A DNA stretch of 64,000 bases, taken from positions 272,661,749 to 272,725,748 of the forward strand of contig NC_085842.1 in assembly GCF_035594765.1 (NCBI RefSeq), read 5' to 3'. How positions within the stretch are numbered: position 1 is the stretch's first letter; each line of letters opens with the position of its first letter. Shown here one piece after another: positions 9,825 through 64,000 of this stretch. Made by a program: the position numbers and the translations under genes. This DNA is from Anolis carolinensis. Its lineage: Eukaryota. The notes under the pieces are model-generated. The model saw only the letters and a program-made list of their open reading frames with translations, had not been told where the DNA came from and made no database searches.

Positions 9825-9848
9825 ATTAGCACCCATTTTTTATAAAAA

Positions 9849-9910
9849 CAGTCACCCTTTGTATCCATGTATTTTGTATCTATGTATCCCACCTCTACAG
9901 CTTGAAAATA
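9849..9910. mobile_element. Possible Tigger/pogo-type MITE end
   Basis: cagtcaccctttgtatccatg...tgtatct resembles Tigger-type termini; the match is short. Confidence 0.35.
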
Positions 9911-12540: not shown

Positions 12541-13062
12541 GGCCGGGCTGTGGCGCAGCTGGTTAGTAGCCAGCTGCAATAAATCATTACTGAACGAGAG
12601 GTCATGAGTTCAAAGCCAGCCCACGTCTGATTGAGTACCTGACCATTAAAAATAGCCCAGCTTGTTGTTGACCTAAGCAACCCGAAATAATTTGCATCTG
12701 TCAAATAGGAAATTTAGGTACCACTTATGTGGGGAGGCTAATTTAACTAATTTACAACACCATAAAAATTGTCCAGGAGTATGTGGAAAGGAATGAGGAA
12801 GCAATCCATCAAGGACTCAGTGTCACAGTGGATGATGAAGCAGTAGCTTCCCCCTGTGGCCAGAATTGAGCACACCCTCATGAAGCCTGGAAGCTGGAAC
12901 ATGTTAAATTGCCTCTGTGTCTTCGTCTCTGTCTCTGTCTGTATGTCATATGGCATTGAATGTTTGCCATGTATATGTACATTGTGATCCACCCTGAGTC
13001 CCCTTCGGGGTGAGAAGGGCGGAAAATAAATACTTGAAATAAATAATAAAGAAATAAAGAAA
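12541..13062 (+). mobile_element. tRNA-derived SINE with L2-type tail (ACASINE2-like)
   Basis: A-box-like tggcgcagctgg, B-box-like gagttcaaagcc, and the 3' end ccctgagtccccttcggggtgagaagggcgg followed by an (aaat)n tail. Confidence 0.85.
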
Positions 13063-13454
13063 AGGTGTGCAAACTTTATGCAAGCAAAGCAGAGAAAATA
13101 CGTTGTGTAATTGTTGGTAAATACATATTCATTTATTTTCCTAAGCAGATGCTCCTGTCTTCGTGTTATCCATTTGATTTTGCTACTCTTAACAAAAAGG
13201 TTGAAATATTTGCCCTGAGGATCACTAATAGTAAAAGAAAAAGGATGGCATCTGCTAAAGAAATAATATAAATGTGGAATAATCATTGAGGTTTGTTCAA
13301 TAAAAATTTAGGACACAGACGTAAATTTCTAACACAGAAAAGAAAGGGGGTGGGGGAAATCCAGAGAAAACCTTAAAGGCACATGTGCCAGTTATCATGA
13401 GTATTAAGAATACAAGGTTTTCTTGCTATTGTAATGAAATAATATGAGGTAATA

Positions 13455-14004
13455 TGCAAGAGCAGAGAAACTGATTTTTGGCTGCATCAAAAGAAATATA
13501 ATATTTAGTTCAAGGGAAATAATGTTGACTCTCTGTCCTGTTTTAATCAGAACTCACCTAGAATACTGTGTCCAATTCTAGGCACCACAACATAAAAAAG
13601 ATATTGACAAGCTGGAAGGTGACCAGAGAAGGCTATTAAAATGATGAAAGGTCTGGTGCCCATGTCCTATAATGAACGGCTTAAAAAGTTAGGTATGTCT
13701 AACCTGCAAAAGGTTGAGAGGAGACATTATTGTCAAGTTTAAAGATGTGAAAGGACATGATAAGGAAGAGAGAAAAGGCTTGTTTTCTGCTGCCCTGGAG
13801 ACTTGGACTCAGAGCAATGTGTTCAAATTACAAGAAAGGAGATTCAGCAGCTCTCTGCCTCGAAGTGTAGTGGAAGCTCCTTTTTTAGAGGCTTTTAAAA
13901 AGAGTGGATAAACATCTGTCAGGGGTACTTTGTGCTTTTCATACATGGCAGCGGGTTGGACTAGATGGCCATTGTGGTCTCTTCCAACTCTACAATTCTA
14001 TGAT
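13455..14004 (+). mobile_element. CR1 LINE 3' fragment (degenerate ORF2 C-terminus and 3' UTR)
   Basis: cacctagaatactgtgtccaattc (HLEYCVQF) and gacaagctggaa motifs. The end is ggttggactagatggcc...tcttccaactc...attctatgat. Confidence 0.9.
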
Positions 14005-14672
14005 ATATATAAGGTACAACAACCTTGGTTTAATCATTACTTCTTGTGAGAGTTCAAACTTGATTTGATCTCAGACCTACACATTTGTCTTTTTAGCAGT
14101 TCACTGTAACTGCAAAACACTTCTTTAATGCCACATTTCAAATAAGTCAGTTTTCTTCCCATCATCATTTATCATTGTCCAGCTTTGACATAAATTTATT
14201 TTCACAAATTTAAATTCTATTTTTTTCTTCTCAACAGCATCAGTTGAATTTCAATATTTTTATTATTTATACATCAAATTTATATCCTACCTGTCAGCCA
14301 AAAATAATATTCATGGCAGCTTATTTTGAAATAATCCTGGTATTTTGTAAATGTTTGTCTGTCTATTTATTTTGTTTATTTGAGGCATTTATATACAATT
14401 GTCCAGGTAAGCCTTACAAAATGATTAGGCCTTTTAAAAAACTAATTATACAATGAAAAAGATAAAGACAGAAAACCTAGAAGGTTTTTTTTAAAAAATA
14501 AATAAATAAGACTGATATATTTTTTCTCTTCTATAGGCAGGATTGTCCTTCAGTAACCTGAAGATGGGTGAACTTATTAACTTGGTTTTCTTCCCATTTC
14601 TCACATTTTCAATCTTATATGTATTCTGTTCTATTTGCACATCAGTTTTTAACTTTTAGAAAGTCACTATCT

Positions 14673-15317
14673 TTTCTTTATTGCATAATAATTTTTATTT
14701 ATTTCTTGTAAGTGTAGATACAGCGAAACAAAAAGAGAACAAAAAGCAAGTAGTAAAGAATGGCGAGAAGAGAGACAGGGAGTGAAACAAAGAGGAGAAG
14801 AAAAAAATGAAGTGCTATTTGACTTCCCATCTGTGCTTCGGAGACCTTTTTTCATTTTCCTTTAACTTTTGTCATTTTTTCTAGCCTCCTTTCCATTAGC
14901 TCACTTCTTTATACAAGACAGATCTATCGTAAAATCCATTTTTCTTTTTCTCAGGAATTTTATAACATTTGTCCAATCAGTCTTATTTTTCCCTTCTCTT
15001 ATTTTTTGTGGGGAAAAAATAGGAACCTTCTTTCACCAATGGTGGACATGTGGGAAAATCAAAGAATTTTGGAAGACAATTCACCAAATGACACAAAAGA
15101 TGATAGGAACCAAATTCAAATTAAAACCAGAAACATACCTACTAGGATTCTCAAACTCAGTATTAAAGAAAAATGATGATAGAATACTATTTTACATTAG
15201 CACTGCGGCTAGACTAACCTTAGCAAGAGTTTGGAAAAGAAAAGAACTTCTGAATTCGAAAGACTGGCTAACCAAAATATTGGACATTATACAAATGGAC
15301 ATTTTGACACAAAAAAA
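14673..15317 (-). mobile_element. 5'-truncated, 5'-inverted (twin-primed) L1 fragment
   Basis: 15007-15317 encodes the L1 ORF2 C-terminus on + (CGEKIGTFFHQWWTC...ILTQK). 14673-15010 carries the continuation and 3' UTR on -. 17-bp TSD ttagaaag(tc/ca)actatct at 14656-14672 and 15318-15334. Confidence 0.85.
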
Positions 15318-16146
15318 TTAGAAAGCAACTATCTAAATGGAAAATTATACCAGACTAGTTCACTCTCCTCTGTACATGGAAGCCTCCCTGGGATGGAAAT
15401 AGGCATGGAAGGAACATGGAAATAGTTGAAAATATGTTTTTTGTCATGAAATACTGACAAGAATAAATATGTCTTGTAAAGAATCTTAGCAATTTATAAT
15501 TTATTTTTCAGAAAATTCGCACGTGGCTATTTTGTACAGAAAATAGCATGATGGGCACAGAAAGTAATATTTCTGCACACAAACAATTATTATTTTCTGT
15601 GCAGAAATATGTTTTCTATGCTTTTTTTGCAATTTCTGCAAAGAACTATGAAGACTCTCTCACAACAGAAAACTGATAAAACATCATGTGGCTTTTTTGA
15701 CAATGAACTTAGTGAAGAATTTTATCGTTGGATGAAAGTGCTATCTGGAAAATATTATCTGGAAGAGAAAATGCAAACAGGCTGTTATGGGAGGAAGTGT
15801 TCCTTCAAGTTTCTGCACGCCTCACAATTTAAGACTTTCAGAGTAAGCACCAGAAGTTATTATTGAGCCTGATCACAAATAGGCAGCAAATGAATAAATC
15901 TACTGAGATACGATCCATGCCAGACAAAATATTGGTAGCAGTCTTCATGCTCTAGTAGTAGTCATTCTTCATTACCGCAAGGTGTTCATTACAATAATCA
16001 AGACTGACTCCTAGCAGACTATCTCTTATAGAGTGTTAGCTAAAACACAAAACATAACCTAGAAATAATTTAAATTAGAAAGAGTGAAACAGATCTCACC
16101 CCAAGATAGAACTAAAGATATTACAGACTGACCTTACTTACAGTTT

Positions 16147-21109: not shown

Positions 21110-21162
21110 GTCTAGGGTTTTTAAGCATTTTTGCTATCATCCCCTTAAAAAAATAACATCTA

Positions 21163-21365
21163 GGGAATATCTACAAGGCAGAATGAGTTCATTTTACACC
21201 ACTTTGACTACCATGCATCAATGCTATGGCATCATATAGTTTTACAAGCCACCTCTGCCCAAAAGTGCTGCTGCTTCACCAGTATAACATCCATGCTTCC
21301 ATGCATTCAGATATAGCAGTTAAAGTGGTGTCAAACTGCATTAATTCTACAGTGTAGATGCACCC
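21163..21365. mobile_element. Harbinger/PIF-type palindromic MITE
   Basis: ggg..atctaca ... tgtagatgcaccc termini, with the inner inverted repeat acaccacttt / aaagtggtgt. Confidence 0.75.
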
Positions 21366-46117: not shown

Positions 46118-46162
46118 ATTCATATAATATATATTCATATAATATTCATATAATATATATTC

Positions 46163-46210
<48 letters not shown>
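46118..46210. repeat. (TA)n microsatellite preceded by attcatataatat repeats
   Basis: Directly visible; forms the left flank of the hAT element. Confidence 0.95.
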
Positions 46211-46214
<4 letters not shown>

Positions 46215-46560
46215 TTGCTCAAATAATTCGATTTCCCCGTTACTCGTTACTAATTCGTTACTTTTGTAACTTGTGAAGCAATATACGACCTTGATTGTCC
46301 ACACGTCTGGATATCGTGGTTTCGAACCGCGACAGGCCCTTTTTCTTATGTCGTCATTTTTTTTCGTTGGGAAAAAAAGGTTTTTGCAAATCACCCAAAC
46401 TTGTTTAAGTGCACTGGGGCAACCTAGCGTGTTGTTTCCACCTTGTGGCCAATCAGAGAGCACGTTTAACCCAGGGGAGGGGCTAGTAGTACGTCCTGAA
46501 TGAAAAGAGCGTGCACGGGCGCCTCGTGGCTCATTTCGGGATCTGCAGAGAGAGGGTGGG

Positions 46561-47147
46561 TTGGGAGTGAGATTCCGCAGGCAGGCAAGATTGCTGCATC
46601 ACAGCTTCCTTGGCTGAGCTAGAGTTACAGATTAGAAGACCGGGAGAAAAGGTTGGGTGGGTGAGGTGGGGTGGGAAAGTGTTGGATGTTTCTGAATTTT
46701 TTTTTCCAAAGGGCCTGTGGCCTTTTTTCCCCACAAGCTTGGCGTTTGCCATTTTCCCACCAGGCCTGTAATTTTTCTGCTGCGCCATTTTGCCTGATGC
46801 GGGCGGGGTGGGCTTTCGTTTTGATTAGGAAACTTTTCTTTTTTCAACGCTAGTTGGGAGTGAGATTCCAGGCAGGCAGGCAGGCAAGATTGCTCCGTCA
46901 CAGCTTCCTCGGCTGAGCTACAGATTATAAGACCGGGAGAAAAGGGTGGGTGGGTGAGGTGGGGTGGGAAACTGTTGGGTGTTTCTGAATATATATTTTT
47001 CCAAAGGGCCTGTGGCCTTTTTTCCCCACAAGCTTGGCGTTTGCCATTTTCCCACCAGGCCTGCAATTTTTCTGCTGCGCCATTTTACCTGGTGCGGGCG
47101 GGGTGGGCTTTCGTTTTGATTAGGAAACTTTTCTTTTTTCAACGCTA
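46561..47147 (+). repeat. Tandem repeat, ~293-bp unit x2
   Basis: ttgggagtgagattcc at 46561 and 46854; both copies end ttttcaacgctag. Confidence 0.95.
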
Positions 47148-47149
47148 GT

Positions 47150-48106
47150 AGCAAAGTCTGGCAAAAGGATTGCACATCCCATCCTCCTCCGTAGAATAAC
47201 ACCTGTTTTTGGAAAAAAGGGACCCTGATTTTGGTTCCTTTCCTGCTCTGCTGCTCTAAAGGGCTTGTCTGTGCCAGGGCAGCAGTGATTCAAAAGCAAA
47301 GTCTGGCAAAAGGGTTGCACATCCCATCCTCCTCCCTAGAATAACACCTGTTTTGGGAAAAAAGGGACCCTGATTTTGGTTCCTTTCCTGCTCTGCTGCT
47401 CTAAAGGGCTTGTCTGTGCCAGGGCAGCAGTGATTCAAAAGCAAAGTCTGGCAAAAGGATTGCACATCCCATCCTCCTCCCTAGAATAACACCTGTTTTG
47501 GGGGAAAAGGGACCCTGATTTTGGTTCCTTTCCTGCTCTGCTGCTCTAAAGGGCTTGTCTGTGCCAGGGCAGCAGTGATTCAAAAGCAAAGTCTGGCAAA
47601 AGGGTTGCACATCCCATCCTCCTCCCTAGAATAACACCTGTTTTGGGAAAAAAGGGACCCTGATTTTGGTTCCTTTCCTGCTCTGCTGCTCTAAAGGGCT
47701 TGTCTGTGCCAGGGCAGCAGTGATTGAAATCAAAGTCTGGCAAAAGGGTTGTACATCCCATCCACCTCCCTAGAATAACACCTGTTTTGGGAAAAAAGGG
47801 ACCCTGATTTTGGTTCCTTTCCTGCTCTGCTGCTCTAAAGGGCTTGTCTGTGCCAGGGCAGCAGTGATTCAAAAGCAAAGTCTGCCAAAAGGGTTGCACA
47901 TCCCATCCTCCTCCCTAGAATAACACCTGTTTTGGGAAAAAAGGGACCCTGATTTTGGTTCCTTTCCTGCTCTGCTGCTCTAAAGGGCTTGTCTGTTCCA
48001 GGGCAGCAGTGATTCAAAAGCAAAGTCTGGCAAAAGGATTGCACATCCCATCCTCCTCCCTAGAATAACACCTGTTTTGGGAAAAAAGGGACCCTGATTT
48101 TGGTTC
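47150..48106 (+). repeat. Tandem repeat, 145-bp unit x~6.6
   Basis: agcaaagtctggcaaaagg..gcacatccc recurs every 144-145 bp with near-identical units. Confidence 0.97.
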
Positions 48107-48128
48107 CCCCTCTTTCCTTTCTTCTCAG
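48094..48128 (+). promoter_or_regulatory. Predicted 3' splice acceptor upstream of the transposase ATG
   Basis: Branch-point-like CTGAT, a polypyrimidine tract of ~23 nt and CAG ending at 48128. Confidence 0.45.
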
Positions 48129-48355
48129 CTGCTCAAGTAAGGCTTGCTGCAAATATCTTTCTCCTATATTAACCCTATCAAGGTCTGGAAAATACAGGTA
48201 TCCCCTTTTTAACGTATAACAACAAGAACAACTGTAATAGAAGGGTTTGCGGCAGTTCGACCCAGAACACATTGCCAATCAAGAAACAACACATCTTTCC
48301 CCCCAGTAACACAATACCTTCCTCCCTTCTGTAACCTCAAAACACTCCCGTTATC

Positions 48356-50830
48356 ATGAAGCGTTCAGCTGAACGCAGGTCTGGTGGAGCAAGTCCTGCT
48401 AGTGGTCAAGCAACAGCCCGGACACTGTGGGGGGCCAAAAAAGTTAGAGTGGGTCCCATCAGTCTGGAACGCAGAACGATGGGAGTGGGTGGACTTGATG
48501 AAGAAGCTGGCTGTTCGACTGCTGAAAGTTCACAGCCCTCCACCCGGAGCCAGTTGTCGGTTGGAGCTGAGACAAGTGGACGATCAATGGAACATGCAGG
48601 TGTTGCCATCTTGGAACTACAGGTGGTGGATAGTGAGGATCTTGATAACCCCACCCCTCCACCCGCTACTGACAGTGAGGAGAAGGTAGAGGAGGTAGTA
48701 CCATCAAATCATAGACTTTCTCATGCTGCTGAAAGGGTGCCCACGACTCCTATCTCCGTGGGCGTCGGCACAGTGGCTGTGGGGAGGCCAAGGTCATATA
48801 TTTGGGACCATTTCCATGTCCACACTCAGCGTGCCACTTTGGCAGTTTGTAGACACTGTGGGGCAAATATCAGCAGAGGCAGAGACCTGAGACATCTTGC
48901 GACCTCGGGGTTGAGCTCTCACATGAAGCGACACCATCCCTCGATATCGGTAGGAGGGGGAGCTGCAAGCCCTTGCAGTGGCAGCATTAGCACACAAAGT
49001 TCTCCTGGTGTAGATGGTGGAAGGCAGACACAGTCCACCTTGGAGGATTGGGGCATGCCTTTAGCCAGGAAGAGAACGGGGGAAACATTACCGACACCCC
49101 AGCAGATAACCCAAAGTGTGGGAGAGATGATGGCCCTTGATCACCATCCCTTCCGCCTGGTTGAACAAGAAGGCTTCGTCCGCCTTATGAAAGGCCTGTG
49201 CCCCCGCTACAAAATCCCCTCCCGTCACACCTTTTCCAGAAAAGTTATTCCCGGATTGTACGAGGGCTGCAAGGAACGCATTATCCAGATGTTGCGGAGT
49301 GCCATGGGAGGACACATCCATTTTACCTCTGATATTTGGTCAAGCTTGGGAGGAGGCCATTCCTACCTCTCTCTCACGGCACATTGGTGGGAGAAGGAAG
49401 GCAGTATGGATACATCCCATCATTGGGCACTCCTCGCTTTGGAGGTAGTTGATCATGATCACAAGGCAGAGACCATCTGCAGCTATCTGGGAAACATGAT
49501 GGGGGAGTGGATGCGGTGCAGGCCGGAAGAAATGAGGAGGGGCTTCATGGTGACTGACGCTGGTAAAAATATGATCAAAGCGGTTGAAAGTGCAGGGTTT
49601 TTGAATGTCACCTGCATGGCCCACTTGCTTCACAATACCGTCAAGGAAGGTTTAAAGAGCCCGGAAGAGCAGCCGGCCAGCACCGCAAACATCGCCCTGC
49701 TGATCGAGCGCTGTAGAAAGATCGCGGGCTACTTCCACAGGAGCATCAAGGCAGCCCGGCAGCTGAGAGACAGGCAGAGCCTTGAAGGCCTCCCGCAGCA
49801 TAAGCTGCTCCAGGACGTCTCTACCCGGTGGAATTCAACCTATAAGATGCTCGAACGCATGGTCGAGCAGCAGAAGGCGGTACACGGCATCTCCCTTACA
49901 TTGGTTGCGCCTGTTAGCAAGCTTGTTCCAACTAAGCAAGAGTGGGACACCATCTCCCAGCTGGTAGACGTCCTAAAGCCATTCAAACATGCCACAGAGA
50001 CCCTTTCGGAATCAAAAGCCCTTCTTAGCCAGGCAGTGCCCATAGTCTTGGGGCTAAGGAGGCACCTAGAAAGGCTTGGGGCCGGTCGAACACTGGACTC
50101 CCTGGCTGGACCGCTGACACCGCCGGTCCAGGAGGTGGTGAGGAGGTTGTCCTTTGCTGTACGGAAACGCCTTGAGCCACTTCTTTCCAGCAAGGTCCAT
50201 ATGCTGGCGGCCTTGTGTGATCCACAGCTAAAGTACGTCTGCCCAAAAGACTTTACTGTATGGAAGGCCCAACTAGTTAACCTTGTGAGGGAGGTCTTTG
50301 CTGCCAGGGTGGGGGAAACGGGCACAGTGGCCCCTCTACCGGAAATGCCTGCCACCCCCAGCACTAGCGCTAGTGGCAAGAGTGATAGTCCCGGGGAGCC
50401 GGCAGGGGGTTGCCGTAGGGTTACGGATCTCCAGCCGCGACCAGGAAACGCTTTCTTTGCAGAGACGGTGGCCATACTAGCCTGCTCGGAAGATTCCTCT
50501 TTGCTGGCTTCTGCGCAAAAGGTAGACTCGGCCGAGTGCTCGGTCAACAGGTACTTTGAGGAGCCTCCTGAGATAATTTCTTGTGATCCATTGGCCTATT
50601 GCGCTTCACGTGATCACATGTGGCCGGATCTGTCGCACGTAGCCCGCCAGTTTCTCAGCTGTCCGCCCACCAGCGTGCAGAGCGAAAGGGTCTTCAGCCT
50701 AGCGGGAGATGTAGTCACGCCCCACCGCAGCTTGCTGGACCCTCAAACAGTTGAGAAACTGGTCTTCCTGAAGGCCAACCTTCCCGTGTTGAATTACCCC
50801 GATTTGGATTTTGACACCGACGCCTCCTAG
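48356..50830 (+). CDS. hAT (Ac-family) transposase, 824 aa, ZBED4/ZBED6-like architecture
   Basis: BED finger (IWDHF..AVCRHC..ISRG..LSSHMKRHH), DDE triad (FTSDIW, MVTDAG, SERVFS), CxxH motif (CMAH), TRWNS and a C-terminal hAT dimerisation domain. Confidence 0.95.
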   Translation: MKRSAERRSGGASPASGQATARTLWGAKKVRVGPISLERRTMGVGGLDEEAGCSTAESSQPSTRSQLSVGAETSGRSMEHAGVAILELQVVDSEDLDNPTPPPATDSEEKVEEVVPSNHRLSHAAERVPTTPISVGVGTVAVGRPRSYIWDHFHVHTQRATLAVCRHCGANISRGRDLRHLATSGLSSHMKRHHPSISVGGGAASPCSGSISTQSSPGVDGGRQTQSTLEDWGMPLARKRTGETLPTPQQITQSVGEMMALDHHPFRLVEQEGFVRLMKGLCPRYKIPSRHTFSRKVIPGLYEGCKERIIQMLRSAMGGHIHFTSDIWSSLGGGHSYLSLTAHWWEKEGSMDTSHHWALLALEVVDHDHKAETICSYLGNMMGEWMRCRPEEMRRGFMVTDAGKNMIKAVESAGFLNVTCMAHLLHNTVKEGLKSPEEQPASTANIALLIERCRKIAGYFHRSIKAARQLRDRQSLEGLPQHKLLQDVSTRWNSTYKMLERMVEQQKAVHGISLTLVAPVSKLVPTKQEWDTISQLVDVLKPFKHATETLSESKALLSQAVPIVLGLRRHLERLGAGRTLDSLAGPLTPPVQEVVRRLSFAVRKRLEPLLSSKVHMLAALCDPQLKYVCPKDFTVWKAQLVNLVREVFAARVGETGTVAPLPEMPATPSTSASGKSDSPGEPAGGCRRVTDLQPRPGNAFFAETVAILACSEDSSLLASAQKVDSAECSVNRYFEEPPEIISCDPLAYCASRDHMWPDLSHVARQFLSCPPTSVQSERVFSLAGDVVTPHRSLLDPQTVEKLVFLKANLPVLNYPDLDFDTDAS

Positions 50831-51390
50831 AACAACAGCTGTCCTCCTTTAAGCAGCTCTGCTTCTGATTAACTTTGGCTATTTCTGTTGGGGGGGGTGC
50901 CCCTTTGGCCTATGTCCAACAACTCTCTCCTCTATCCTACTATGCTTTCCTTCCTCTCATCCCTTCTGTTCTCGTCTTTATCATCACACACCGTTGCCCA
51001 CTTTCGTTTTTGGGTAATTCAATCTCTAGGGGCCGTTCCCTGAGGTTCTTTAGGTTTTGTCTCCTGTAATACTGATTCTGGATGGGAAGAAGGATATTCT
51101 GGGGGAACTTAGTCCATAAAAGCCAAGGTAGGAAATGCAACCGCTTTGGGTTCAGAATGGATTAAATTCAATTCTCTACCCTTTTTTTATCAAAAAATAT
51201 TTCGGGAATGAGCCATGACTGTTAGGTCTTCTCCAGATTCTCGCAGCTTCTGTACAGAAAGAACATTGTTATAATCGATGTGGATCCTTCGGTAAGACAT
51301 ATTTGGTGAAGGAATACGGCAGAGTCTCACTTTACAGAGATAACGGTCCATCAGAACCTTTGTGGCTGTGTCTTGCCGCATTAAGTAGTA

Positions 51391-52209
51391 CACCTCGGCC
51401 TTGGCCACCACTTCTCAAAATTTTTCTCTTTCACTGTCCCATCGCCTTGAGTGGGTGTGGTCAACGCAGTGGCCGCGGGACGGCCGCCCTAGGGTCCCCT
51501 CGCCCTCTGGCCACGCACACGGACGGTGCTGTTTGCCCGTCAGGGCGTGTGCCTTTGCGGCTGCTAGTGACCTGTGGGCGCAGGTTCTGTGGCGTGGGAA
51601 CTTCAGTTTGCTGGCTTGTTGGTAGGACAATAGAAGAGGGTGGAATCACACCGCAGAAAGCAGGACACCTCGGCCTTGTCCACCACTTCTCAAATTTTTC
51701 TTCTTCCACTGTCCCATCGCCTTGAGAGGCTGTGGTCGACACTGTGGCCGCGGGACGGCCGCCTTATGGTCCCCTCGCCCTCTGGCCGCGCACGCGGACT
51801 GTGCCGTTTGCCCGTCAGGGCGTGTGCCTTTGCGGCTGCTAGTGACCTGTGGGCGCAGGTTCTGTGGCATGGGAACTTCAGTTTGCTGGCTTGTTGGCAG
51901 GACGATAGAAGAGGGTGGAATCACACCGCAGAAAGCGGGACACCTGGGCCTGGCCACCATTTCTCAAAATTTTTCTCTTTCACTGTCCCATCCCCTTGAG
52001 CGGGTGTGGTCGACGCTGTGGCCGCGGGACGGCCGCCTTAGGGTCCCCTCGCCCTCTGGCCGCGCATGCGGACGGTGCCGTTTGCCCGTCAGGGCGTGTG
52101 CCTTTGCGGCTGCTAGTGACCTGTGGGCGCAGGTTCTGTAGCGTGGGAACTGTTTTTTGCTGGATTGTTGGTAGGACGATAGAAGAGGATGGAATCACAC
52201 CGCAGAAAG
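51391..52209 (+). repeat. Tandem repeat, 275-bp unit x3, GC/CpG-rich
   Basis: cacct(c/g)ggcc at 51391, 51666 and 51941; units end ggaatcacaccgcagaaag. Confidence 0.97.
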
Positions 52210-54309
52210 TCTTTCACTCTGAGCTAAGACTTGTAGTCTTCTCCGATCTATGGAGAACTCTTGGATGGATTCACAAAAGAATTCCCTGTCGGACATCAAC
52301 GGTGACATTTCCTTCAAGTCCATGCCATCCTCATGCTATGCCTGTAATTTCACTACCTCCTTGAAGTGGACGGGCATTAAAACATGGAGGATGGACCAGT
52401 TGGATCTTCTTACACTCCCAGGCACTGTCCTGTTTTTCAAAAAGCAATTATTTTCAAAAGTGCCATTCTTCCCACGCTCTGCCTTCCTTACGGTCAAGCT
52501 CTCACATCCACAGGTTGCTGGGGTATGGCATTGCGATGACAATGCGAGTATGCGGTCCTCCAATGTTTGCGTGAAGTCTCTGCTCTTATTTTGTCAAGTG
52601 TAGACATAGCTCTGCAAAACCTCTACTAACTTGCAGGCCACAGTCCGCACCTACAGTGATATGTCGCAAGAATAAATAAAACGTCTGTCAAACCCTCCCC
52701 ATCCAATCCATGTTGTTGACAGTTATAAATCTGTGTGGTTCCCTTTGGCTTCCTTCTCTTACAACCCAGCTTTGGTCCTTTCTTCTTTCACCTTTGAGAG
52801 AAGGCTCCTCTGCCCCTACTCTCTTTCAGCCAGCAGACTGTTATCTCATACCATAGGTTGTAAATGTGCCTTTCATAAATTTTAAATCCTGCCTACAGGT
52901 CCTCTAGCCACGCATGTCGCATTTAATGTTCCACACAAACAGCTAGATGATTCCAGAGGCTGAACTTATGCGGCCCTGCCGCAACCCGTTCCGAATCATG
53001 AAAACAGCGGTTGATCCGTTTTCTGTTCCCAGCATGTCAACTAACACTTTTCGTGGGACAGACTAGGTGACTTGGAATTCCCAAATAACCCAGCACATTC
53101 CATTAATTATCCTCCAAGCAGTTCAAGGCTTTGAAGAGAGTATTCAACATGGCCGACGATGGTGTGACCCCTTGCAGCAGCTTGCCGAGTGACCGATCTG
53201 AGAATACTCTTCCTCGAGGCCAAACTCCCGGTCCTGGAATATCAAGAAATCCCTTCGAAGCGAGGAGGACTCTCAGAGAGTTTATAAAACGATCAATGTT
53301 AAATGATTAAAAAAAATTCTATTTCCCACCAACATCTCCCTGCGTGGACTCGGTGCGGACTACTTGGGGCAGCGGCCCAAGCAACATAAGGACAAAATAA
53401 AATAAAATAATTTAGAATTAATTTTTTTTAATGAAAGTAATAAAATAATTTTATGTCTTGACATCATAAAATATTACGATACTTGCAGAAATGTCTGCTG
53501 TGCAAAAGTATCAGGTACACTTTTCCAACACTTTTGCTGAAACAGTCCAGGACAATTCTTAGCGTTTTGTATTTGAAAATGAGGACTGTGTTTTGACGGA
53601 TGAGACGAAAGGTGGTTTACAAGCCAAATTTGTTAACGCAGCCATCGTTAAATGTGGGACACCCTGCCCAAAGCCTCTTGTCATTTAGGATAAAGAAAAC
53701 ATTTTATTTATCTCCCACCCCTTTACAATGCTTTTACAATATGGGATAACTGAAATCCCACAATGACAGGGATAAACCTTTTTTTAATGGATCCCAGCCA
53801 TTGCCTGCTACAAGTTTTATCTCTATGTGTGTGTCTGAGAGGATAAGACACAGAAGGTAAGTATGTGATGCTAATCTTCTGCAGACCCATAAGTAGAGAA
53901 ACAAACCACTCAGAAACTCTGTATTGCTATTAAAAACAATGAGTTATGTCTTCATGGTTTCTTTTGTCTCAACATTTGTGCTATGTTTTAGTTCTTTGGA
54001 TTCATTTCTACTCCATAAAGACAATATCTTTCATTATTTTACATCCACAACTTTACTGAAACTGTATACCAACAGAAGTCATTTCCCTCTTTCCAGCTCA
54101 GCTGCTAGAGATCTTTTTTTTTTAAATTTTTATTTATGAGTGTTTTGTGATACATAAAACAAAAGGGAAGGAAGAGAAAAAAAGAAGAAGAAGAAAAAAA
54201 GCCCCACCCCTCTTGACCTTCCAGAACTTTTACATGACAACATTTTTAACTCTATCTTAACGGCGTCCATGGGGATAATCCCAAGGTAATTTCATACCAT
54301 AAATCGTCT

Positions 54310-57300
54310 TCAGTTCATTCTTTCTTTTTCTATGTATTCACTCAGTAGATTCCATTTTGTCTCTCGCCTGGTTGCACTGTCCTGTTTTAAAAATTGAGTT
54401 AGTAAGTCCATGTTTCTGATGTCCAAAAGTTTCAGAAACTAGTTTTCTTTAGGTGGGATTTCTTGTGACTTCCACATTTTTGCCAGGCTTATCCTAGCTG
54501 CCGTCACCATATATGTAAATAGCTTTTCTGTATTATAGTCCATCTGAAAGTCCGTTATTCCTAACAGGAAATACTCCGGCTTGATATCGAATTTCATTTT
54601 GATTATTTTCTCCATTTCTTTATGTATAGTTTGCCAATATTTTTTGACCTTTTTACACCTCCACCACATATGCATGAAATCACCTATATGCTTTCCGCAT
54701 TTCCAACATTTGTCATCCCTTTTCCCTTTACTCATTTTTACAAGCTTTTCTGGGGTTAGGTACCACCTATAGAATACCTTGTACCAGTTTTCTTTTATTT
54801 CTGCCGCATATGTGTATTTGATTTTTGTTTTCCATATTTTTTCCCATTCTGACATGCTTATCGATCGCCCTATCTCTCTCGCCCACTTCGTCATTACCTC
54901 TTTAACCTGCACATCTTCCGTTTCCCATATTAACAACTGATTGTATAATATTTTAATTATTTTCTTTTCTGATTTTAACATTTTATCCCAACAGGTTTCA
55001 TTCTTTTCAAATCCTATCTTGCAATCCTCTTTAAAACTTTCATTTATTTGCCAGTAATTCAACCATGTCATTTTTGGTTCCAGCTGTCTTATTTCTTCAT
55101 ATCTTTTCAATTTAATTTCTTGATTCTCTACCTTTAACATCTGTCCATACGTTAGCCAATTCTCTCTTGGTGTTTCCCTTCTGTGCTCTGCTTCTAAAGG
55201 TGAGTACCACATCGGGGTCTTTGCATAAAATCTTCTTTTATACCTATACCAAGTTCCTATCAGGGCTGATCTTAGGTAGTGGTTTCTAAAGTTTTTTTCC
55301 TTTTTGTCTTTTTCTTTCCATAAATAGCTATGCCATCCCTTGTTTAAATCATATCCTTCCAGATCTAGTGTTCTCTTATCTTTTAGATTGGCCCAATCTC
55401 TGATCCAGTTCAATGCTGCTGCATCGTAGTATAATTGTAGATCTGGTAACCCCAGCCCTCCTCTTTTCACGTCATCTTTCAAATGTTTTAAAGCAATTCT
55501 GGCCTTTTTACCTTCCCACAAAAATCTACTTATTTCTTTATGCCAGTTTTGGATCATTTTTTTATTTTTTAGGACCGGTATATTTTGAAAAAGAAATAAA
55601 ACCTCCGGCAAAATTTTCATCTTAACTACAGCTATTTTACCCAATAATGAGAGTTTAAGAAACCCCCATTTTTTCATTTTTTCCCTTATCTCCCTCCATT
55701 TCTTTTCATAATTGTTTTTTTGTAGCTGAGCATTACTTGCCATCAGCTCTATCCCTAAATATTTTATCTTTTTCACAATCTCTATCCCCGTTTTCACTTC
55801 AAGATTTTCCTTGTTCTTCTGTGACATATTTTTTGTTAAAATTTTTGTTTTTTCGCGGTTGATCTTCAATCCTGCTACTTCCCCGAAGTTCCCAATTACC
55901 TCCCACCAACCTTCAAACTGCTCTAGTGGATTCTCTATCAAGCAAACTACGTCGTCGGCAAAGGCGCGGATTTTATAGTTATGGTTTCTTACTCTTAAGC
56001 CTTGAAGATCTTTGTTTTTCCTGATTGCTTCCAATAGAACTTCCAGAGTCATCACAAACAATAGCGGGGAGAGTGGGCACCCCTGCCTTGTTCCTTTGTT
56101 TATCTTAATACTACTTGACAGTTTCCCATTTGTTATTATTCTTGCCGTTTGTTGAGTGTAAATTGCCTTTACTGCCTTTATAAAGAAAAAACCTGCATCC
56201 ATTTCTCTAAGAATTTCTAACATGCAATACCAGTTGACGTTATCAAATGCCTTTTCAGCGTCTAGAAATAAAAATGCTATTTCCTTTTGAGGATTTTTAT
56301 CGTAATATTCTATGGCATTCAAAATGTTTCTGATGTTTTCCTTCATATGTCTACCTGGTAAAAAGCCTGTTTGATCGTTCTTAATTCTTTCCTTTAGTAT
56401 CTCTTTAAGTCTTGCTGCTAAGATACTTGTAAATATTTTGTAATCGGTGTTCAGAAGCGATATTGGTCTGTAATTCTTTACCTTGGTATTATCTGCCTTT
56501 TCCTTTGGTAATAATGTAATATTTGCACTTTTCCAGGTTGCTGGGATTATTCCTTCTTCTAATATTTTATTCATAACCTTTTGGAGTGGGGTGGTTAAAA
56601 TCTCCTTAAATGTTTTATAGTATAGCATTGTGAATCCATCGGGTCCCGGTGCTTTATTAGATGGAAGTTTTTTGATGACTCTATTTATTTCCTCTTGTGT
56701 TACCTTCCTGTTTAGAGTCTCTCTCTGGCTTTCAGTGATCCTTGGAATTTCTTGCTTTCCTAGATATTCTGTAATCCTTTCTTTTGGAATCTTATCTTCT
56801 GAATATAATCTTTCATAATACTGTAGGAATTGCTTCTCTATATCCTCATTATTGTAATACGTTTTCTCCCCTTCATGTATCTTATTAATTATATTTGCCT
56901 GCTTTTTTTTATTTATCCTCCTTGCCAACCATCTACCTACTTTATTCGCGTTTTCGAAATGGTATTGTCTAGTATATTTTAATTTTTTTCCTATTTCCTC
57001 CACATGCAATGCCTCTATTTCTTTCCTGGCCACTTCAATTTTTAATTTAATTTCTTTATCTTGGGGTTTTCCTTTTAGTTTAGTTTCTAATTTCTCCATG
57101 TCCTCTAGTAAATTCCTGTATCTTAAAGATCTTGCTTTGTTCATTATGACATTATGCTGTATCATCAGTCCTCTTATGTACGCCTTGCTGGCGTCCCATA
57201 TCACTTCAATTGGTGTATCCTCCTCCTTGTTGTTTTCGAAGTATTCGTGTAGTAATTCTCTATATCTATTTTGGTCCGATGCCTTTTTTAATAGTAAATC

Positions 57301-58060
57301 ATTTATTCTCCAATTAAATTCTTTATTTCTCTCCCCTTTATTCTCTATTGTCATTTCTAAAGGAGAGTGGTCTGAATTTAGTCTGGGCAGTATTTTAATT
57401 TTGCTTACTTGACTCGTTATTGACTTTGTACCCCATATCATATCTATCCGAGTCCAAGTTGAGTGTCTGTGAGAGAGAAATGTATAATCTCTTTCGTCTG
57501 CATGTTTAAACCTCCATATATCTTGTAGTCTGAGATCTTCTTTCATTTTTTAAATTTTTTGGGCAATTCTCCTATAGCTTTCCCTTCCCTAATTTTCCCC
57601 TGTTTAGATTTATCCAATTTTGCGTTCAATACCCCGTTAAAATCTCCCATTAGTAGAAGGTCATCATATTCCTGTTCCAATATTTTTTCAAATAACATTT
57701 CTACAAACTTTGTTTTACTCCCATTGGGGACGTATATATTACAAATTAAGATTTTCTTCCCTTCCCTTTCTATCATGACCCCTAACATCCTCCCTTCATG
57801 GTCGTTGAATATTTTTCTAGAAGGAATCTTGTCATTCACATATGTTACTACCCCCCTTTTTTTTCCGCGCACGATGCATAGTATGTTGTTCCTAGATTCT
57901 TTTGTGTTAAATGTGCAACATGTCTGCTTGAAATATGTGTTTCTTGCATACAAATCACATCATATTTCCCTTTTTTCAATTGATGCCATATTTTACTTCT
58001 TTTATTAGGAGAATTAAAACCATTAATGTTGTTTGAATATATTTTAATTCCTTGCGCCAT
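54310..58060 (-). pseudogene. L1 ORF2 (APE endonuclease, reverse transcriptase, CCHC), disrupted
   Basis: NINGFN, MQETH, MGDFN, RIDMIW, SDH, APGPDGF, YRPISLLN, GTRQGCPLSP, FADD and CWKC..H..C motifs. Two 1-nt frameshifts (~57860, ~57548) and a premature TAG at 54439-54441; the frame continues to TGA at 54310. Confidence 0.93.
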
Positions 58061-59129
58061 CGTCTTCTTTTACTGCACTAACCTTATCTACTATCCCTCT
58101 CTCGAAATCCATTAAATTTATAAAATCTTCTGGTGATTTTTCTCTTATTCTTTTCTTTTGTCTACCTATCTCTTCGTCCTTATCCCCTCCCTCCTCCCCC
58201 CTCTCTCCCCCCTCCCTCCTCCCCTCCTGCTCTTCTCCCCCTGCTCCCTTCCTCAGATGTTTGTCGTAAAAAGCTCTTGCTTTATGTTCACTTATTATCC
58301 AATGCCTGTTCCCTTCCCATGTCAGCATCAGGCCTTCCTTTTTCTCCCACTTAAATCTTATATTCCTTTTTCTTAATTCATCTGTCAAGAAAAAATACTT
58401 GCGTCTTTTTTCCAATACTGATACGGGGTGTTCTTTGAGTATTGCTATTTTGTTTCCTCTATCAATTGTTGGGTTGTTGGCGTTTCCCTTCAAAACCTCA
58501 TCTCTCAGATTCTTTTTACAAAAATGAACTAATACATCTCTTGGGGTGTTATATTTTTTGGCATAATTTGATTGTATTCTGTACACTCTATCTATATTGA
58601 TATCCACCCCTTCTCTTGTTTTTTGTGTAATATTTGATACAATTTCCACAATCTTGTCCCTTATATTTTCGTTTTTTTCCTCTCTTAGATTTCGAAATCT
58701 CAATTGGAATTCTTTTTCTTTTGATTCTAAAATTTCCTGCTGTGTCTTCACTATATTTATTGTTTTCTCAATTGCCCCCATCTCTTTTCTCAGGACTCCT
58801 TGTTGTTTTTTAATTATTTCCACTTCCTTTTCCCTTTCTTTACAGCCTTCTTTCGTTAGCTCTAAATCTTCTCTTATTCTATTTATTTCCTCCTTTACTA
58901 GAGTTTGTATTTCTTCCTTTATATCCCTTTTCATCTCTGTCATCTCTTCTCTCATCTTGAGATATTGTCTATCTTGTTTTTCCTGAATTTTAGTTACCTC
59001 TGTTTGTAATTTTAAAATCTCCATCATCACATCTTTGATGCTATACTCATCTGTCAGCGTTTCCTTTCTTACACTTATACTTCCTCTCCTTTCCTTATCC
59101 TTGTCTATCTTTGTTTTTGGTATATTCAT
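58044..59129 (-). CDS. L1 ORF1p (coiled coil, RRM, CTD), 361 aa
   Basis: Long E/K-rich heptad region, then LRFRNLRE, IDRVYRI and PRDVLVHF. It overlaps the ORF2 start by 17 nt. Confidence 0.9.
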   Translation of the reverse strand: MNIPKTKIDKDKERRGSISVRKETLTDEYSIKDVMMEILKLQTEVTKIQEKQDRQYLKMREEMTEMKRDIKEEIQTLVKEEINRIREDLELTKEGCKEREKEVEIIKKQQGVLRKEMGAIEKTINIVKTQQEILESKEKEFQLRFRNLREEKNENIRDKIVEIVSNITQKTREGVDINIDRVYRIQSNYAKKYNTPRDVLVHFCKKNLRDEVLKGNANNPTIDRGNKIAILKEHPVSVLEKRRKYFFLTDELRKRNIRFKWEKKEGLMLTWEGNRHWIISEHKARAFYDKHLRKGAGGEEQEGRREGGERGEEGGDKDEEIGRQKKRIREKSPEDFINLMDFERGIVDKVSAVKEDDGARN

Positions 59130-60354
59130 GGCTTCTAAAAATCCTTTCAGATACTCCCCTCTCTACTCCCCCACTCCTCCCCGTTCCCTCCCCCAAGGGA
59201 GAAAAAGACAAAAAAAAAAAGTAAGCCCCAATTCTCCCCTGAGAGAGCAGAGGAGTGATATGTTATTTTGATAGTGTTGGTACTACTACACTACACCACC
59301 CTCTGCACGCCTCCTTAATCCCTCCAGTCCACTCATGCACCTTTATCAGTATTGCAATACCCCATTTACCCTCCCAGTTTACGGTTCACCTCGATCGAAT
59401 ATTGCTCATTTAACAGGTATGATGTATCTTGACCTTTACTGTCCTCTATGCCTCGGCCACTCTGTTGGTCCTGAGGATCCTGAAGGCTTCCTTTTATTTG
59501 CCCTTGGCTTTCGGAGCTCCACGCCGCCGTTTCCTCCTTCCTCCTTACGCTCCCTCCACTCTTTCCTTCCCGCAGCGCCCTCGCGTCCTCGCGTCGCGTC
59601 ACGCCAATCTTTACGTTGCTGCGTTGCTGCGTTGCTGCGTCTTGCGTCTTACGTCTGACGTTTCCGTCATCCTGACATCCTGGTGTCCGACGTCCCGTTT
59701 CCGGCGTCCTGTGCCTCTCTGTCCGGCCCCGATCCGTCGTCTCCTCTCCTCCCCTCTCCTCACCTCTCCTCACCGGATCTTCCCTTCTTCCCTGCTGTCG
59801 GCCTTCTGCCACCGGTTAGTTGTTCAATTATTTATATTTATATTTAGTTTCCACCTTCCCGCTTGTTGTTCCCCCATACTTAGTCCATGTAACAGCAAAA
59901 TAAGGTGAAATAAGGTGAAATGAATTCAAAACAAACAGTCCTCACCTTCCCTTTAAGTCTTTGTATGTTGTATACTATCCTTGCGGACAATGCAAATTAG
60001 AGTCCAGTTCTCAGTTCCTTCCAAGCATGAATAGCCTCCGCTTTGCCGTTGTCCGTTTCTTTTTTCACGCAAAGTTCTTTTTTCTTCAATACCAATTCTA
60101 CCCTTTTTCTTCTTGAGTTTAAAATAATGGCAGGCGTTCTATCCCAGCCGTACCTGGGTGCCTCACCGCACTCCGCCTTCCTTAGCACCTCCTCACCTGA
60201 AGCCCTCTTATGAGGTGCCTCTGGGTTTCAGAAGTCCCACGGTTTCGCGCCTCACTGGTCTCCAACCATGAATGAGGGGGAGCCGCAAGCGGCTCGACCT
60301 GAGTGCCTGGTGAGGGCCGAACGCAAGATTTTGCAGAGAGATCCTCAGCGTTCG

Positions 60355-60389
60355 GCTGCGTCCGCCATCTTTGCCATTACCGGAAGTTC
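60355..60389 (-). promoter_or_regulatory. L1 internal promoter start with ETS-like (CCGGAAGT) and YY1-like (AAGATGGCG) sites
   Basis: Plus strand reads tccgccatctt...accggaagttc at the 5' end of the element, in CpG-rich context. Confidence 0.6.
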
Positions 60390-60469
60390 CAGCTGCTAGA
60401 GATCTTTAATAACACCAGACACACACAAGTCTTCCCTCTAGTTCAACTCCATAGAAACATTAACCTTAC

Positions 60470-60875
60470 ATCAGAGTCTTAAAACCTTCCACTTCCAAAA
60501 AGCCTTCGAGGACTGTGGGGTGGATCGCTGCCAGTGGAAGAATTGGTTGCCAGGCCAAGAGTATTTCACACTTTATTGATTTTTAACTCTCAAACTACCT
60601 CATCTCTGTGGAAGTATTCAGCCCTCGGCCCAGAGCCGTGTTTTTACACCACTGTTTTTTAAGCAGGTAATGCTGTATGCTGACTGTGACAGCTTTTTTA
60701 TTTTATGTGTTATTGATGCAACATTTTCTTTAATATATATAAAATTTTTGGGTTTAATTGTTCCCATTGTATTGTTGACAGGCACGCCCCATGGAAGCCG
60801 CTCAGAGTCCCTCCGGGAAGATGGGGCGGGGAATAAAAATAAAGATCTTACTGTTGTTATTATTATTATAATCAT
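60470..60875 (+). mobile_element. L2-like 3' end inside the hAT element
   Basis: LKTFHFQKAF-coding stretch, aagccgctcagagtccctccgggaagatggggcgggg hairpin and a (tta)n tail. Confidence 0.6.
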
Positions 60876-61036
60876 TATTGATGTGATGGTGGCCACGACT
60901 ACCCTGCGGCCAGCTTGCTTGTGTCCACCCGGTAGGGGTGCGGCCAGGGCCGCTGACGGTTTGCTGTCAGGGAGTGTGCCTTTGTGGCAGCTAGAGACTT
61001 TGGGGCTCTGGTCTGGTTGACACAGAAGTCAGTGGA

Positions 61037-61610
61037 GCTTGGGCCCACATTTCACTAGCAGACGTGAAGAAAACACGCCCTTCACCTTGGGTGGTGGGGA
61101 GGTGGTGTGGGGCCGGCCAACGGTGGCCGGCCGCCCTGGGCAGTGGGGCTTGGGCCCACATTTCACTAGCAGACGTGAAGAAAACAAGCCCTTCCCCTTG
61201 GGTGGTGGGGAGGTGGTGTGGGGCCGGCCAACGGTGGCCGGCCGCCCTGGGCAGTGGGGCTTGGGCCCACATTTCACTAGCAGACGTGAAGAAAACAAGC
61301 CCTTCCCCTTGGGTGGTGGGGAGGTGGCGTGGGGCCGGCCAACGGTGGCCGGCCCCCCTGGGCAGGGGGGCTTGGGCCCACATTTCACTAGCAGACGTGA
61401 AGAAAACAAGCCCTTCACCTTGGGTGGTGGGGAGGTGGTGTGGGGCCGGCCAACGGTGGCCGGCCGCCCTGGGCAGTGGGGCTTGGGCCCACATTTCACT
61501 AGCAGACGTGAAGAAAACAAGCCCTTCCCCTTGGGTGGTGGGGAGGTGGTGTGGGGCCGGCCAACGGTGGCCGGCCCCCCTGGGCAGTGGGGCTTGGGCC
61601 CACATTTCAC
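61037..61610 (+). repeat. Tandem repeat, 111-bp unit x5.2, G-rich
   Basis: gcttgggcccacatttcactagcagacgtg recurs every 111 bp with almost identical units. Confidence 0.97.
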
Positions 61611-62379
61611 CCTCTGTTTTTTTCTCTCTCTCTCTCTATAGGGGATGCATGCCGGTCAACTGTGGCCGGCTCAGGGTGGGGTCTTTGCTGCCTGCGGCTT
61701 TTTTCTTTCTTTTCTTTTTGCTGCCTCTAGGCCTACGTGGTCGAGTTTCCCACGATGCATCGCATCTCTCTTCTCTCGCAGCTGTCCCTCCGCACACGTT
61801 TGGGCAATTTTGCCCAGATCCTTCCTTTGGGGCGGGGTCCTCTGGTTTTTTTTTCTCTCTCTCTCTCTCTAGGGGATGCATGCCGGCCAAGTGTGGCCGG
61901 CTCAGCGTGTGGCCTTTGCTGCCTGCGGCTTTTTTCTTTCTTTTCTTTTTGCTGCCTCTCGGCCTACGTGGTCGAGTTTCCCACGATGCATCGCATCTCT
62001 CTTCTCTCGCTGCTGTCCCTCCGCACATATTTGGGCAATTTTTCCCAGATCCTTCCTTTGGGGCAGGGTCCTCTGGTTTTTTCTCTCTCTCTCTCTCTCT
62101 CTAGGGGATGCATGCCGGCCAACTGTGGCCGGCTCAGGCTGGGGTCTTTGCTGCCTGCGGCTTTTTTCTTTCTTTTCTTTTAGCTGCCTCTCGGCCTACG
62201 TGGTCGAGTTTCCCACGATGCATCGCATCTCTCTTCTCTCGCAGCTGTCCTTCCATTCATATTTGGGCAATTTTTCCCAGATCCTTCCTTTGGGGTGGGG
62301 TCCTCTGTTTTTTTTTTCTCTCTCTCTAGGGGATGCATGCCGGCCAACTGTGGCCGGCGCAGGGTGGGGTCTTTGCTGC
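61611..62379 (+). repeat. Tandem repeat, ~231-bp unit x3.3
   Basis: ggggatgcatgccgg at ~61641, 61872, 62104 and 62329; the (CT)n tract length varies between units. Confidence 0.95.
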
Positions 62380-63447
62380 TGAGATAGACATTGGGGTTCG
62401 GATCCCCACGGGGATTTTTTCTTTCTGCTTTTTTCTCCATCTTGGCCATTGCGGTTCGGATCACCACGTTGATTTTTTCTTTCTTTTGGCTGCAATTCTT
62501 CCCACTCCCCCTGCCAGTGCTTTTAATGGATCCAAACCCTCATGTGTATCTCTGCAGCTGAGCCCCCGCCCTACTGCTTTAGGGAAAGGGGCAGGGGTGT
62601 GGGATCCATGCCCCCATGTCTATTTCCGCAGTTTAAGCCCATGCCCTGCTACTTTGGGGAAAGGGGCGGGGGTGGGAGCCGGCCCACGGTGGCCGGCTCC
62701 CCAGGGGAGTGGGATCCAAGCCCCCATTTTGCCATCAGGCGATAAATCAAACCAACATCGCACAAATCTTACATTTCTTGGGAGGGGGAGGGGTTTGACC
62801 ACTGTGGTATAATGGCCTCCAATATGGATGCCTGGGGAAAGTCATTGCGCATTGTGGCAGGCAGCACAATGTGTCTCTTGGCCAATGGCCCCCAATGCCC
62901 TAACATTTTGACAGATTTACGGGCACTGAAACAATGTTACACAAGTAGAAGAAGGACTTTCACAGTGAAGGAACCCCTATTGAACAGGAAATAACAATTC
63001 AAAAGCAGGAACAGATTTTTTGCAATTGGTAAATAAAGTTTTTTTATATGAACTATAAAATTGCGCAATAAATCTTAGGAAAGGGCAAACGCTCTGCAAT
63101 TTTGCGAACAAGCAGGGTGGATTGTGTTCTCCCACTGTACCAAATTTGATCAGTATAGCTGAAAAAATGAGTGCAGGAGAGCCCCCTAACTCCCCCCCCT
63201 CTTGGGCTGTTTTTGGGGCACTGCGCATGCGCGTCCGCCATTAAGGAATTAATTTAGAAAATAATGAATTTTTATTAATTTCGAATTTTTTGGGGGGCAA
63301 AATTCGGAAATGACTTCAGAAACGAAACGCTACCCCCCTCTACTTTTGAAACGAGTTTAGAATCAATTTTTTCATGGATCGCTCAAGCCTAATATATATA
63401 TATCGTGAGTCCCTTTCTGTCTCAAATCTAGAGAGAAAAGTGGGGTG

Positions 63448-63506
63448 TGAAGAAGAAGAAGAGAAGAAAAGGAAGAAGAAGAAGAAGATGATGATGATGA
63501 TGATGA
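63448..63506 (+). repeat. Compound (GAA)n(GAT)n microsatellite
   Basis: Directly visible. Confidence 0.9.
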
Positions 63507-63729
63507 TCAGGGTAATTCAAAATAATAGGGGGGGGGGGAATTGTGGAAAATCCTTAGCCGGGTGATAGTTTTCCCTGTCCATTGGGTGGAGAGTTCTAGT
63601 TTGGGGTTTTGCCAGCACATTGGGATTGATCCCCCTGCTTTTCCCCTTTTCCTCACTTAAAGTTTCTGGCTAAGGCAGGAGGAGTTTTGCAAGGGAGATC
63701 CTGCAGAATTAAAGCCCTGCAATTATCAG

Positions 63730-63860
63730 GCTCCCTCCCTTTTGCAAGCCCCGGTTTAAGCGTGGGAAGACAAAGTGGTTCACAAGGGAGATCCTCCCTC
63801 CACTTTTGCAAGCCCGGGTTTAAGCGCGGGAAGACAAGATCCAGGCTCCCTCCATTTCTG
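63730..63860 (+). repeat. ~63-bp tandem repeat x2 (probably part of another repeat element)
   Basis: ctccctcc..ttttgcaagccc(c/g)ggtttaagcg(t/c)gggaagacaa occurs twice. Confidence 0.7.
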
Positions 63861-64000
63861 AAGCTGGTTTAAGAGACCCATAGAAACCAACCACTCCAAA
63901 ACGGGAAGGGGATCTTCCATGTCAGTTGGGGGTGGAGCCTCCAACAGAAGTTGAGGGATGCGATGGGCTACATGCCCATTTGAATAGCAAAGGTTGCTTG

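Follow-up and report, generated by a model that had tools for sequence, protein, structure and literature searches.

A stretch of Anolis DNA of 64,000 nucleotides, referred to below as the window and containing no N, was analysed. Positions 46209-63391 of the window form a single transposon of the hAT superfamily, 17.2 kb in length, which holds a transposase gene, five tandem arrays and a nested L1. The host genus was identified from protein matches, with several proteins of Anolis carolinensis being 96% identical to the window transposase. All copy-to-copy comparisons were made with one further genomic copy, L001, which is the locus of protein P0004 (96% identical at the protein level) on CM069371.1 of the A. 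carolinensis assembly GCA_035594765.1, retrieved with 10-kb flanks. The features of the window element are given below by position and, where it applies, strand; TIR denotes a terminal inverted repeat, TSD a target-site duplication and ORF an open reading frame, and the arrays are those detected by Tandem Repeats Finder (TRF).

46122-46209: (AT)n microsatellite and left 8-bp TSD ATATATAT, its phase ambiguous by 1 nt; fits NTRNNYAN (PMC3014272)
46209-46220, plus strand: 5' TIR, off-consensus TA(T)GGCTTGCTC compared with TAGGCTTGCTC in L001
46221-46576, plus strand: 5' subterminal region holding three TCGTT/CGTTAC motifs within the first 160 bp; 94.9% identical to L001
46577-47149, plus strand: tandem array, 1.9 copies of 295 bp; present in L001:8264-8942
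47150-48107, plus strand: tandem array, 6.6 copies of 145 bp, CpG-poor; the L001 version has 5.0 copies of 159 bp
48356-50830, plus strand: single-exon transposase ORF of 824 amino acids with BED finger, DDE RNase-H-like core and hAT dimerisation domain
51376-52209, plus strand: tandem array, 3.0 copies of 275 bp; the version at L001:13018-13595 has 2.1 copies of 270 bp
52210-54098, plus strand: part A of the extra DNA, including the decayed relic of a hAT C-terminus at 53134-53251 (plus strand, two frames); missing from L001
54099-54113: left TSD of the L1
54114-60389, minus strand: nested full-length L1 with its poly-A at the low end
60390-60404: right TSD of the L1
60405-61029, plus strand: extra DNA, part B, with a dispersed-repeat fragment at 60786-60879; missing from the L001 element
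61030-61610, plus strand: tandem array, 5.2 copies of 111 bp, with a GC-rich palindrome; not an array in L001
61617-62379, plus strand: tandem array, 3.3 copies of 231 bp; L001:13613-14995 has 5.9 copies
62380-63380, plus strand: 3' subterminal region; the tested part, 62700-63391, is 96.1% identical to L001:15337-16016
63381-63391, minus strand: 3' TIR, TAGGCTTGAGC on the minus strand; identical in L001:16006-16016
63392-63399: right 8-bp TSD ATATATAT

The transposase gene takes up less than a quarter of the element. Its uninterrupted reading frame of 824 amino acids, reported in the preliminary description of this DNA, was confirmed at 48356-50830 on the plus strand. Pfam placed a zf-BED domain at residues 149-195 (E = 5.6e-11) and the hAT dimerisation domain PF05699 at residues 731-809 (E = 1.1e-14), and a phmmer alignment to Hermes structures (E = 4e-19) placed D326, D401 and E777, the CxxH motif at C420/H423, and R491-W492. 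According to Pfam and the Hermes alignment, the catalytic residues are all retained and the BED finger is intact. The element has in common with Hermes, hobo and Ac, of the Ac family of the hAT superfamily, a BED finger, the DDE triad, the CxxH and RW motifs and a C-terminal dimerisation domain, together with short TIRs and a TSD of 8 bp that has the form nTnnnnAn, although the identity of the window transposase to the Hermes sequence is low. Hermes, hobo and Ac elements are 2.7-4.6 kb long. The window element measures 10.9 kb when the L1 and one 15-bp duplication are excluded, which reproduces the earlier estimate of about 10.9 kb without the L1.

BLASTN aligned L001:8264-16016 collinearly with window positions 46205-52209 and then 61611-63391. 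The element in L001 spans 8267-16016 (7.75 kb); it begins with TAGGCTTGCTC at 8267, finishes with GCTCAAGCCTA at 16016, and thus has the same left and right termini as the window element within one 7.75-kb unit. It retains four of the arrays and lacks the counterpart of window 52210-61610, a segment made up of the L1, the 111-bp array and 2.5 kb of extra DNA. Between the two copies, the difference in unique non-coding blocks is 4-5%. The transposase ORFs are 97.7% identical in nucleotides (2.3% difference), with a dS of 0.042, a dN of 0.017 and a dN/dS of 0.41. This ratio points to some purifying selection on the coding sequence in the lineages leading to the copies, which an autonomous family would be expected to show, and fits a combination of selection on active lineages with neutral decay following insertion.

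Five autonomous hAT families have been described in A. carolinensis, among them hobo_AC (Novick et al. 2011, Genome Biol Evol 3:1-14; PMC3014272). According to that study, hobo_AC has the TIR TAGGCTTGMTC and an 8-bp TSD, is about 15,000 bp long (range 9-15 kb) and has incorporated foreign DNA. It counts 25 copies of >90% identity and 290 ORFs, with a pairwise divergence of 1.93% over the ~3-kb transposase region, and has 15 non-autonomous derivative families with the TSD consensus NTRNNYAN (PMC3014272). Its lineages differ through gain and loss of DNA and through recombination between elements (PMC3014272).

We consider it highly probable that window 46209-63391 is one insertion of hobo_AC, a long (9-15 kb) autonomous hAT family (Ac/hobo group) of the green anole. 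The host genus is the same, the TIR core TAGGCTTG is common to both, and the 5' end of the second copy (L001:8267-8277, TAGGCTTGCTC) matches the published 11-nt TIR exactly. The TSD fits NTRNNYAN, both as ATATATAT in the window and as GTGTGTAT to the left of L001. Moreover, the length of ~11 kb without the L1 lies within the published range, the structure differs between copies, and a dispersed-repeat fragment, probably from a transposable element, is present at 60786-60879. The divergence is also alike, at 2.3% of nucleotides between the window and L001 ORFs compared with the published 1.93%. The window copy differs in additionally holding a later, full-length L1. The element is therefore already known: the family was published in 2011, together with its unusual size, its plasticity and the possibility of a lateral origin (PMC3014272).

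Several points weigh against this assignment. It was set by published TIR, TSD, length, host and divergence, and not by alignment to the family consensus (Repbase/Dfam). The 3' TIR, TAGGCTTGAGC in both copies, matches the hobo_AC TIR over its first 9 nt but has G at position 10, as in the group B families; it ends in ...AGC instead of the ...MTC tabulated for autonomous hobo_AC, and so is of the group B non-autonomous type. The window TSD ATATATAT lies inside an AT repeat and is uninformative by itself, whereas the TSD of L001 (GTGTGTAT on the left, GTGTTTTT on the right) agrees at only 6 of 8 positions, its left copy fitting NTRNNYAN. Finally, with its 7.75 kb the L001 copy falls below the published range of 9-15 kb.

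The preliminary reading of the element as one oversized and fairly young hAT was borne out; the element is of autonomous type and falls in the Ac/hobo group. Judged by its ~4-5% neutral divergence from the sister copy and by CpG dinucleotides that have not yet decayed, the element is young. The observed/expected (o/e) ratio of CpG was 0.20 in the 46-kb left flank, compared with 0.34 in the left arm of the element, 0.53 in the ORF, 0.66 at 50.8-53.5 kb and 0.59 at 59.3-63.4 kb. The interior is thus richer in CpG than the flank, as had been noticed before, except for the CpG-poor 145-bp array (0.12 for 47001-48000). The nested L1 is as rich in CpG as the hAT element; its body has ratios of 0.44-0.54, and the 5' untranslated region at 59.2-60.4 kb one of 0.86. 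L1 is a vertically inherited lineage. Because the nested L1 is equally CpG-rich, raised CpG marks young insertions and not a foreign origin.

This result bears on the strongest alternative, in which the element belongs to a recently horizontally transferred hAT lineage and its CpG-rich interior reflects a foreign origin; the preliminary description had taken the CpG content as compatible with such an invasion. The youth of the copies and an interior ratio of 0.34-0.66 against 0.20 in the flank would suit a transfer. Lateral transfer of hobo_AC was also not excluded by Novick et al., although they found a similar element nowhere else (PMC3014272). Yet CpG tracks insertion age, as the L1 ratios of 0.44-0.86 indicate, and the distribution of relatives argues in the opposite direction. 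A word-based search of 5.8 billion predicted proteins, which detects close relatives well, returned no relative of more than 65% identity outside A. carolinensis, and the best matches outside Anolis (other squamates and a caecilian) reached 36-39%. Near-identical copies in distant taxa, the mark of horizontal transfer, were absent from this predicted-protein search.

Closer relatives occur within the anoles. A second subfamily of full-length transposases is 89% identical to the window transposase, with 16 members in the cluster, and paralogues of the same clade occur at 61-65% identity in A. carolinensis and at 58-62% in A. sagrei. The latter two ranges imply that the clade has long been resident in anole genomes. 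Some of its members are KRAB-BED-hAT genes, as in the two relatives that were fetched (61-62% amino acid identity), at L002:8798-12375 in A. sagrei and L003:10001-20916 in A. carolinensis. Both have KRAB exons annotated upstream. They are ~75% identical to each other in nucleotides, and may be paralogues rather than orthologues. The KRAB/SCAN-hAT fusion genes of anoles thus belong to the same transposase clade, at 61-62% identity, but are multi-exon host genes with KRAB exons, whereas the window element is a copy of a mobile element; no TAGGCTTG termini were found around the KRAB-hAT genes within the 22-31 kb fetched. Taken with the CpG of the L1, the age of the clade in anoles and the lack of close relatives elsewhere make a recent horizontal transfer improbable, and the earlier suggestion is not upheld.

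A further alternative concerns the termini. The left end reads T-A-T-GGCTTGCTC from 46209, directly behind an (AT)47 run, so that the window 5' TIR carries one extra or shifted nucleotide relative to the hobo_AC TIR. At the right end, positions 63381-63391 read GCTCAAGCCTA, and ATATATAT comes next. The two ends form an inverted repeat of only ~8-11 nt and do not align as inverted repeats further in. Such a lack of alignment beyond a short TIR is normal for hAT elements. It could nevertheless mean that the ends are unrelated, and that a shorter hAT lies beside a separate, repeat-rich arm at 60.9-63.4 kb, a reading that also draws on the middle 9.4 kb missing from L001. L001 itself contradicts this reading, since the left end, the transposase, the 231-bp array and the right end occur there in one 7.75-kb unit with a TSD matching at 6 of 8 positions. 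The two ends belong together because L001 begins and finishes with the same two termini. No other hobo-type termini were found in the window or in the three fetched loci (L001-L003) besides those of the two copies.

Right-junction contigs were obtained from four DNA runs of one organism over 62700-64000. The contigs are ~100 nt long. Their depth is not a copy number, and hence the results are qualitative. In one run (X1), 23 contigs ended exactly at 63391 with unrelated continuations, which implies that many insertions end at precisely that base. The summed contig depth rose ~3-fold from 63096 and at least 10-fold from 63228, and collapsed after 63403. The last 170-300 bp are common to far more abundant, presumably non-autonomous relatives, among which the contigs with the common end showed no variant at a share of at least 10% in the 3' TIR. 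With L001 carrying both ends and 23 contigs stopping at 63391, unrelated ends become very improbable, and the matching termini can be assigned to one element, as first proposed. The preliminary description would have been refuted by transposase copies ending well before 63391; L001 has the same right terminus and does not refute it.

Within the 17.2-kb element, 5 of the 16 TCGTT/AACGA sites fall at most 160 bp from an end, in inverted orientation. These clusters hint at candidate transposase-binding sites.

The window transposase has nine private changes compared with its close relatives. Four of these, R356H, E675K, W749C and F814Y, hit positions that are invariant even in the 61-65% relatives, and one codon is deleted after residue 627. 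The protein may thus be impaired despite its open reading frame. Because of the off-consensus left terminus and the private substitutions at invariant positions, the window copy is probably no longer fully functional. Exact-protein look-ups of the window transposase and of protein P0005 matched no contig. A second gene at 50.9-53.3 kb was considered and rejected, as the ORFs in that interval either lack a Pfam match or read through the 275-bp array. The open ORF, the dN/dS below 1 and the 'ZBED4-like' label that NCBI gives to relatives might also suggest a domesticated host gene of the ZBED type in place of a transposon gene, but such a gene is practically dismissed by the TIRs and TSD, the numerous near-identical copies at different loci, the full set of catalytic residues and the absence of introns and of a fused host domain, in contrast to the KRAB fusions in L002 and L003.

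The tandem arrays vary in copy number between the two copies. Units of the 145/159-bp array are 97-98% identical within each copy and 86% identical between copies; hence, this array was rebuilt or homogenised separately in each lineage. Conversely, identities within and between copies are alike for the 275-bp array (87-92%) and for the 231-bp array (93-94%), so that these two arrays are older than the split of the copies. The counterpart of the 111-bp array in L001 is a similarity of 53 nt only, at 15300-15350. From the comparison of the two copies, four of the arrays are stable family cargo that is moved by transposition. No array units were found elsewhere in the window.

All five arrays of the preliminary description were recovered by TRF, but its term 'satellite' was too strong for internal tandem duplications of 2-7 copies. 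Long free-standing arrays of tens to thousands of units, as in satellite DNA, were not found in the window; each of the five arrays counts 1.9-6.6 units, and all are internal to the element. Similarly, of the proposal that the lineage generates or transports satellites, transport agrees with four of the five arrays travelling with the element, whereas generation is unsupported, as no long arrays were seen outside elements, although no search of the lizard genome was made for them. Tetris of Drosophila virilis is reportedly a transposon with internal tandem repeats that is able to seed satellites. The window element is similar in its tandemly duplicated non-coding segments, their variable copy number and the homogenisation of one array within copies, but differs in that its arrays have 2-7 units and no expansion to long free-standing satellites was seen. 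We found no literature on arrays inside hobo_AC, and the text of PMC3014272 does not mention tandem arrays.

Two further observations were made on the array units. A GC-rich palindrome of 26-30 nt lies in the 111-bp units at 61331-61356 and 61553-61578, and recurs at 62674-62703, downstream of the 231-bp array. Furthermore, the 275-bp and 111-bp units share a stretch of 30-35 nt in inverted orientation (77-80% complementary).

The nested L1, 6.3 kb long, is flanked by an exact 15-bp TSD (chance expectation 0.00). Because it has this perfect duplication of its own, the L1 is a later nested insertion and younger than the hAT element. Its ORF2 lies in two pieces and frames, 54439-57546 (1035 amino acids, reverse transcriptase; RVT_1, E = 1.8e-39) and 57543-57953 (endonuclease-like), with the change of frame within the endonuclease region. 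ORF1 is open at 58044-59129 (361 amino acids). The matches to the endonuclease and to the ORF1 RBD are weak, both falling under the Pfam cut-offs. The L1 is young, and its 5' untranslated region is CpG-rich.

The extra DNA around the L1 is specific to the window copy. Its left breakpoint lies inside a 275-bp unit. An origin of 52210-61029 as a clean nested transposable element was rejected, as neither a TSD nor a TIR was found at the breakpoints. The extra DNA looks like the product of an internal rearrangement rather than of a clean nested insertion. It agrees with the published gain and loss of DNA among hobo_AC lineages (PMC3014272). Such changes in hAT elements are usually attributed to template switching while gaps are repaired. 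The hAT C-terminal relic at 53134-53251 is weak, consisting of two collinear tblastn pieces whose frames differ (E = 0.002, from a small search), and hints that the extra DNA derives from another, older hAT. The ~95-bp dispersed repeat at 60786-60879 matches L001:18810-18859 and L003:15124-15216 and 21123-21215 at 77-88%, and is likely to be the tail of a further transposable element of anoles.

Some features were found in the DNA next to the two copies. The right flank of the window element at 63570-63930 is a high-copy dispersed repeat; hundreds of contigs match it at 90-99% identity, internal skips of 63-160 nt being frequent, and a (GAA)n tract at 63449-63488 breaks the contigs. Just upstream of the L001 element, at L001:2554-7465 on the minus strand, lies a gene whose annotation lists Ty3 capsid / PEG10 N-capsid domains.

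By analogy with the chemistry of the family, the single-exon transposase would bind the element ends, in their subterminal regions, through its BED finger. Its DDE site would then cut at the TIRs, and the element would be reinserted with an 8-bp target duplication, as in other Ac-family hATs. The window copy inserted into an (AT)n tract. The length of the element is unrelated to the transposase and has three sources. Non-coding segments were tandemly duplicated and are carried along, with copy numbers differing between copies; 2.5 kb of extra DNA was gained, apparently through internal rearrangement; and the L1 inserted later.

The group B type of the 3' end allows a more tentative proposal. 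In Table 1 of the 2011 paper, the 3' TIR type TAGGCTTGAGC is that of the group B non-autonomous families hobo-N7 to N13, and the authors thought that the autonomous parent of group B was gone from the genome (PMC3014272). It is conceivable, if rather less likely than its converse, that the window and L001 copies belong to an autonomous subfamily of hobo_AC with the group B 3' end, and that its arrays turn over through homogenisation within lineages, as shown to date for the 145/159-bp array. If true, hobo-N7 to N13 and N15 would be mobilised by this subfamily, either as their missing source or as a recombinant of that source.

The importance of the locus beyond annotation is slight. Possible additions to the 2011 description are an autonomous copy type with a group B 3' terminus in the current assembly, and four arrays that are stable family cargo, one of them homogenised per lineage. 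For the anole genome, raised CpG is a sign of young insertions rather than of foreign origin. Moreover, the locus provides a worked example of how a cut-and-paste transposon can reach four times the usual size and nonetheless spread.

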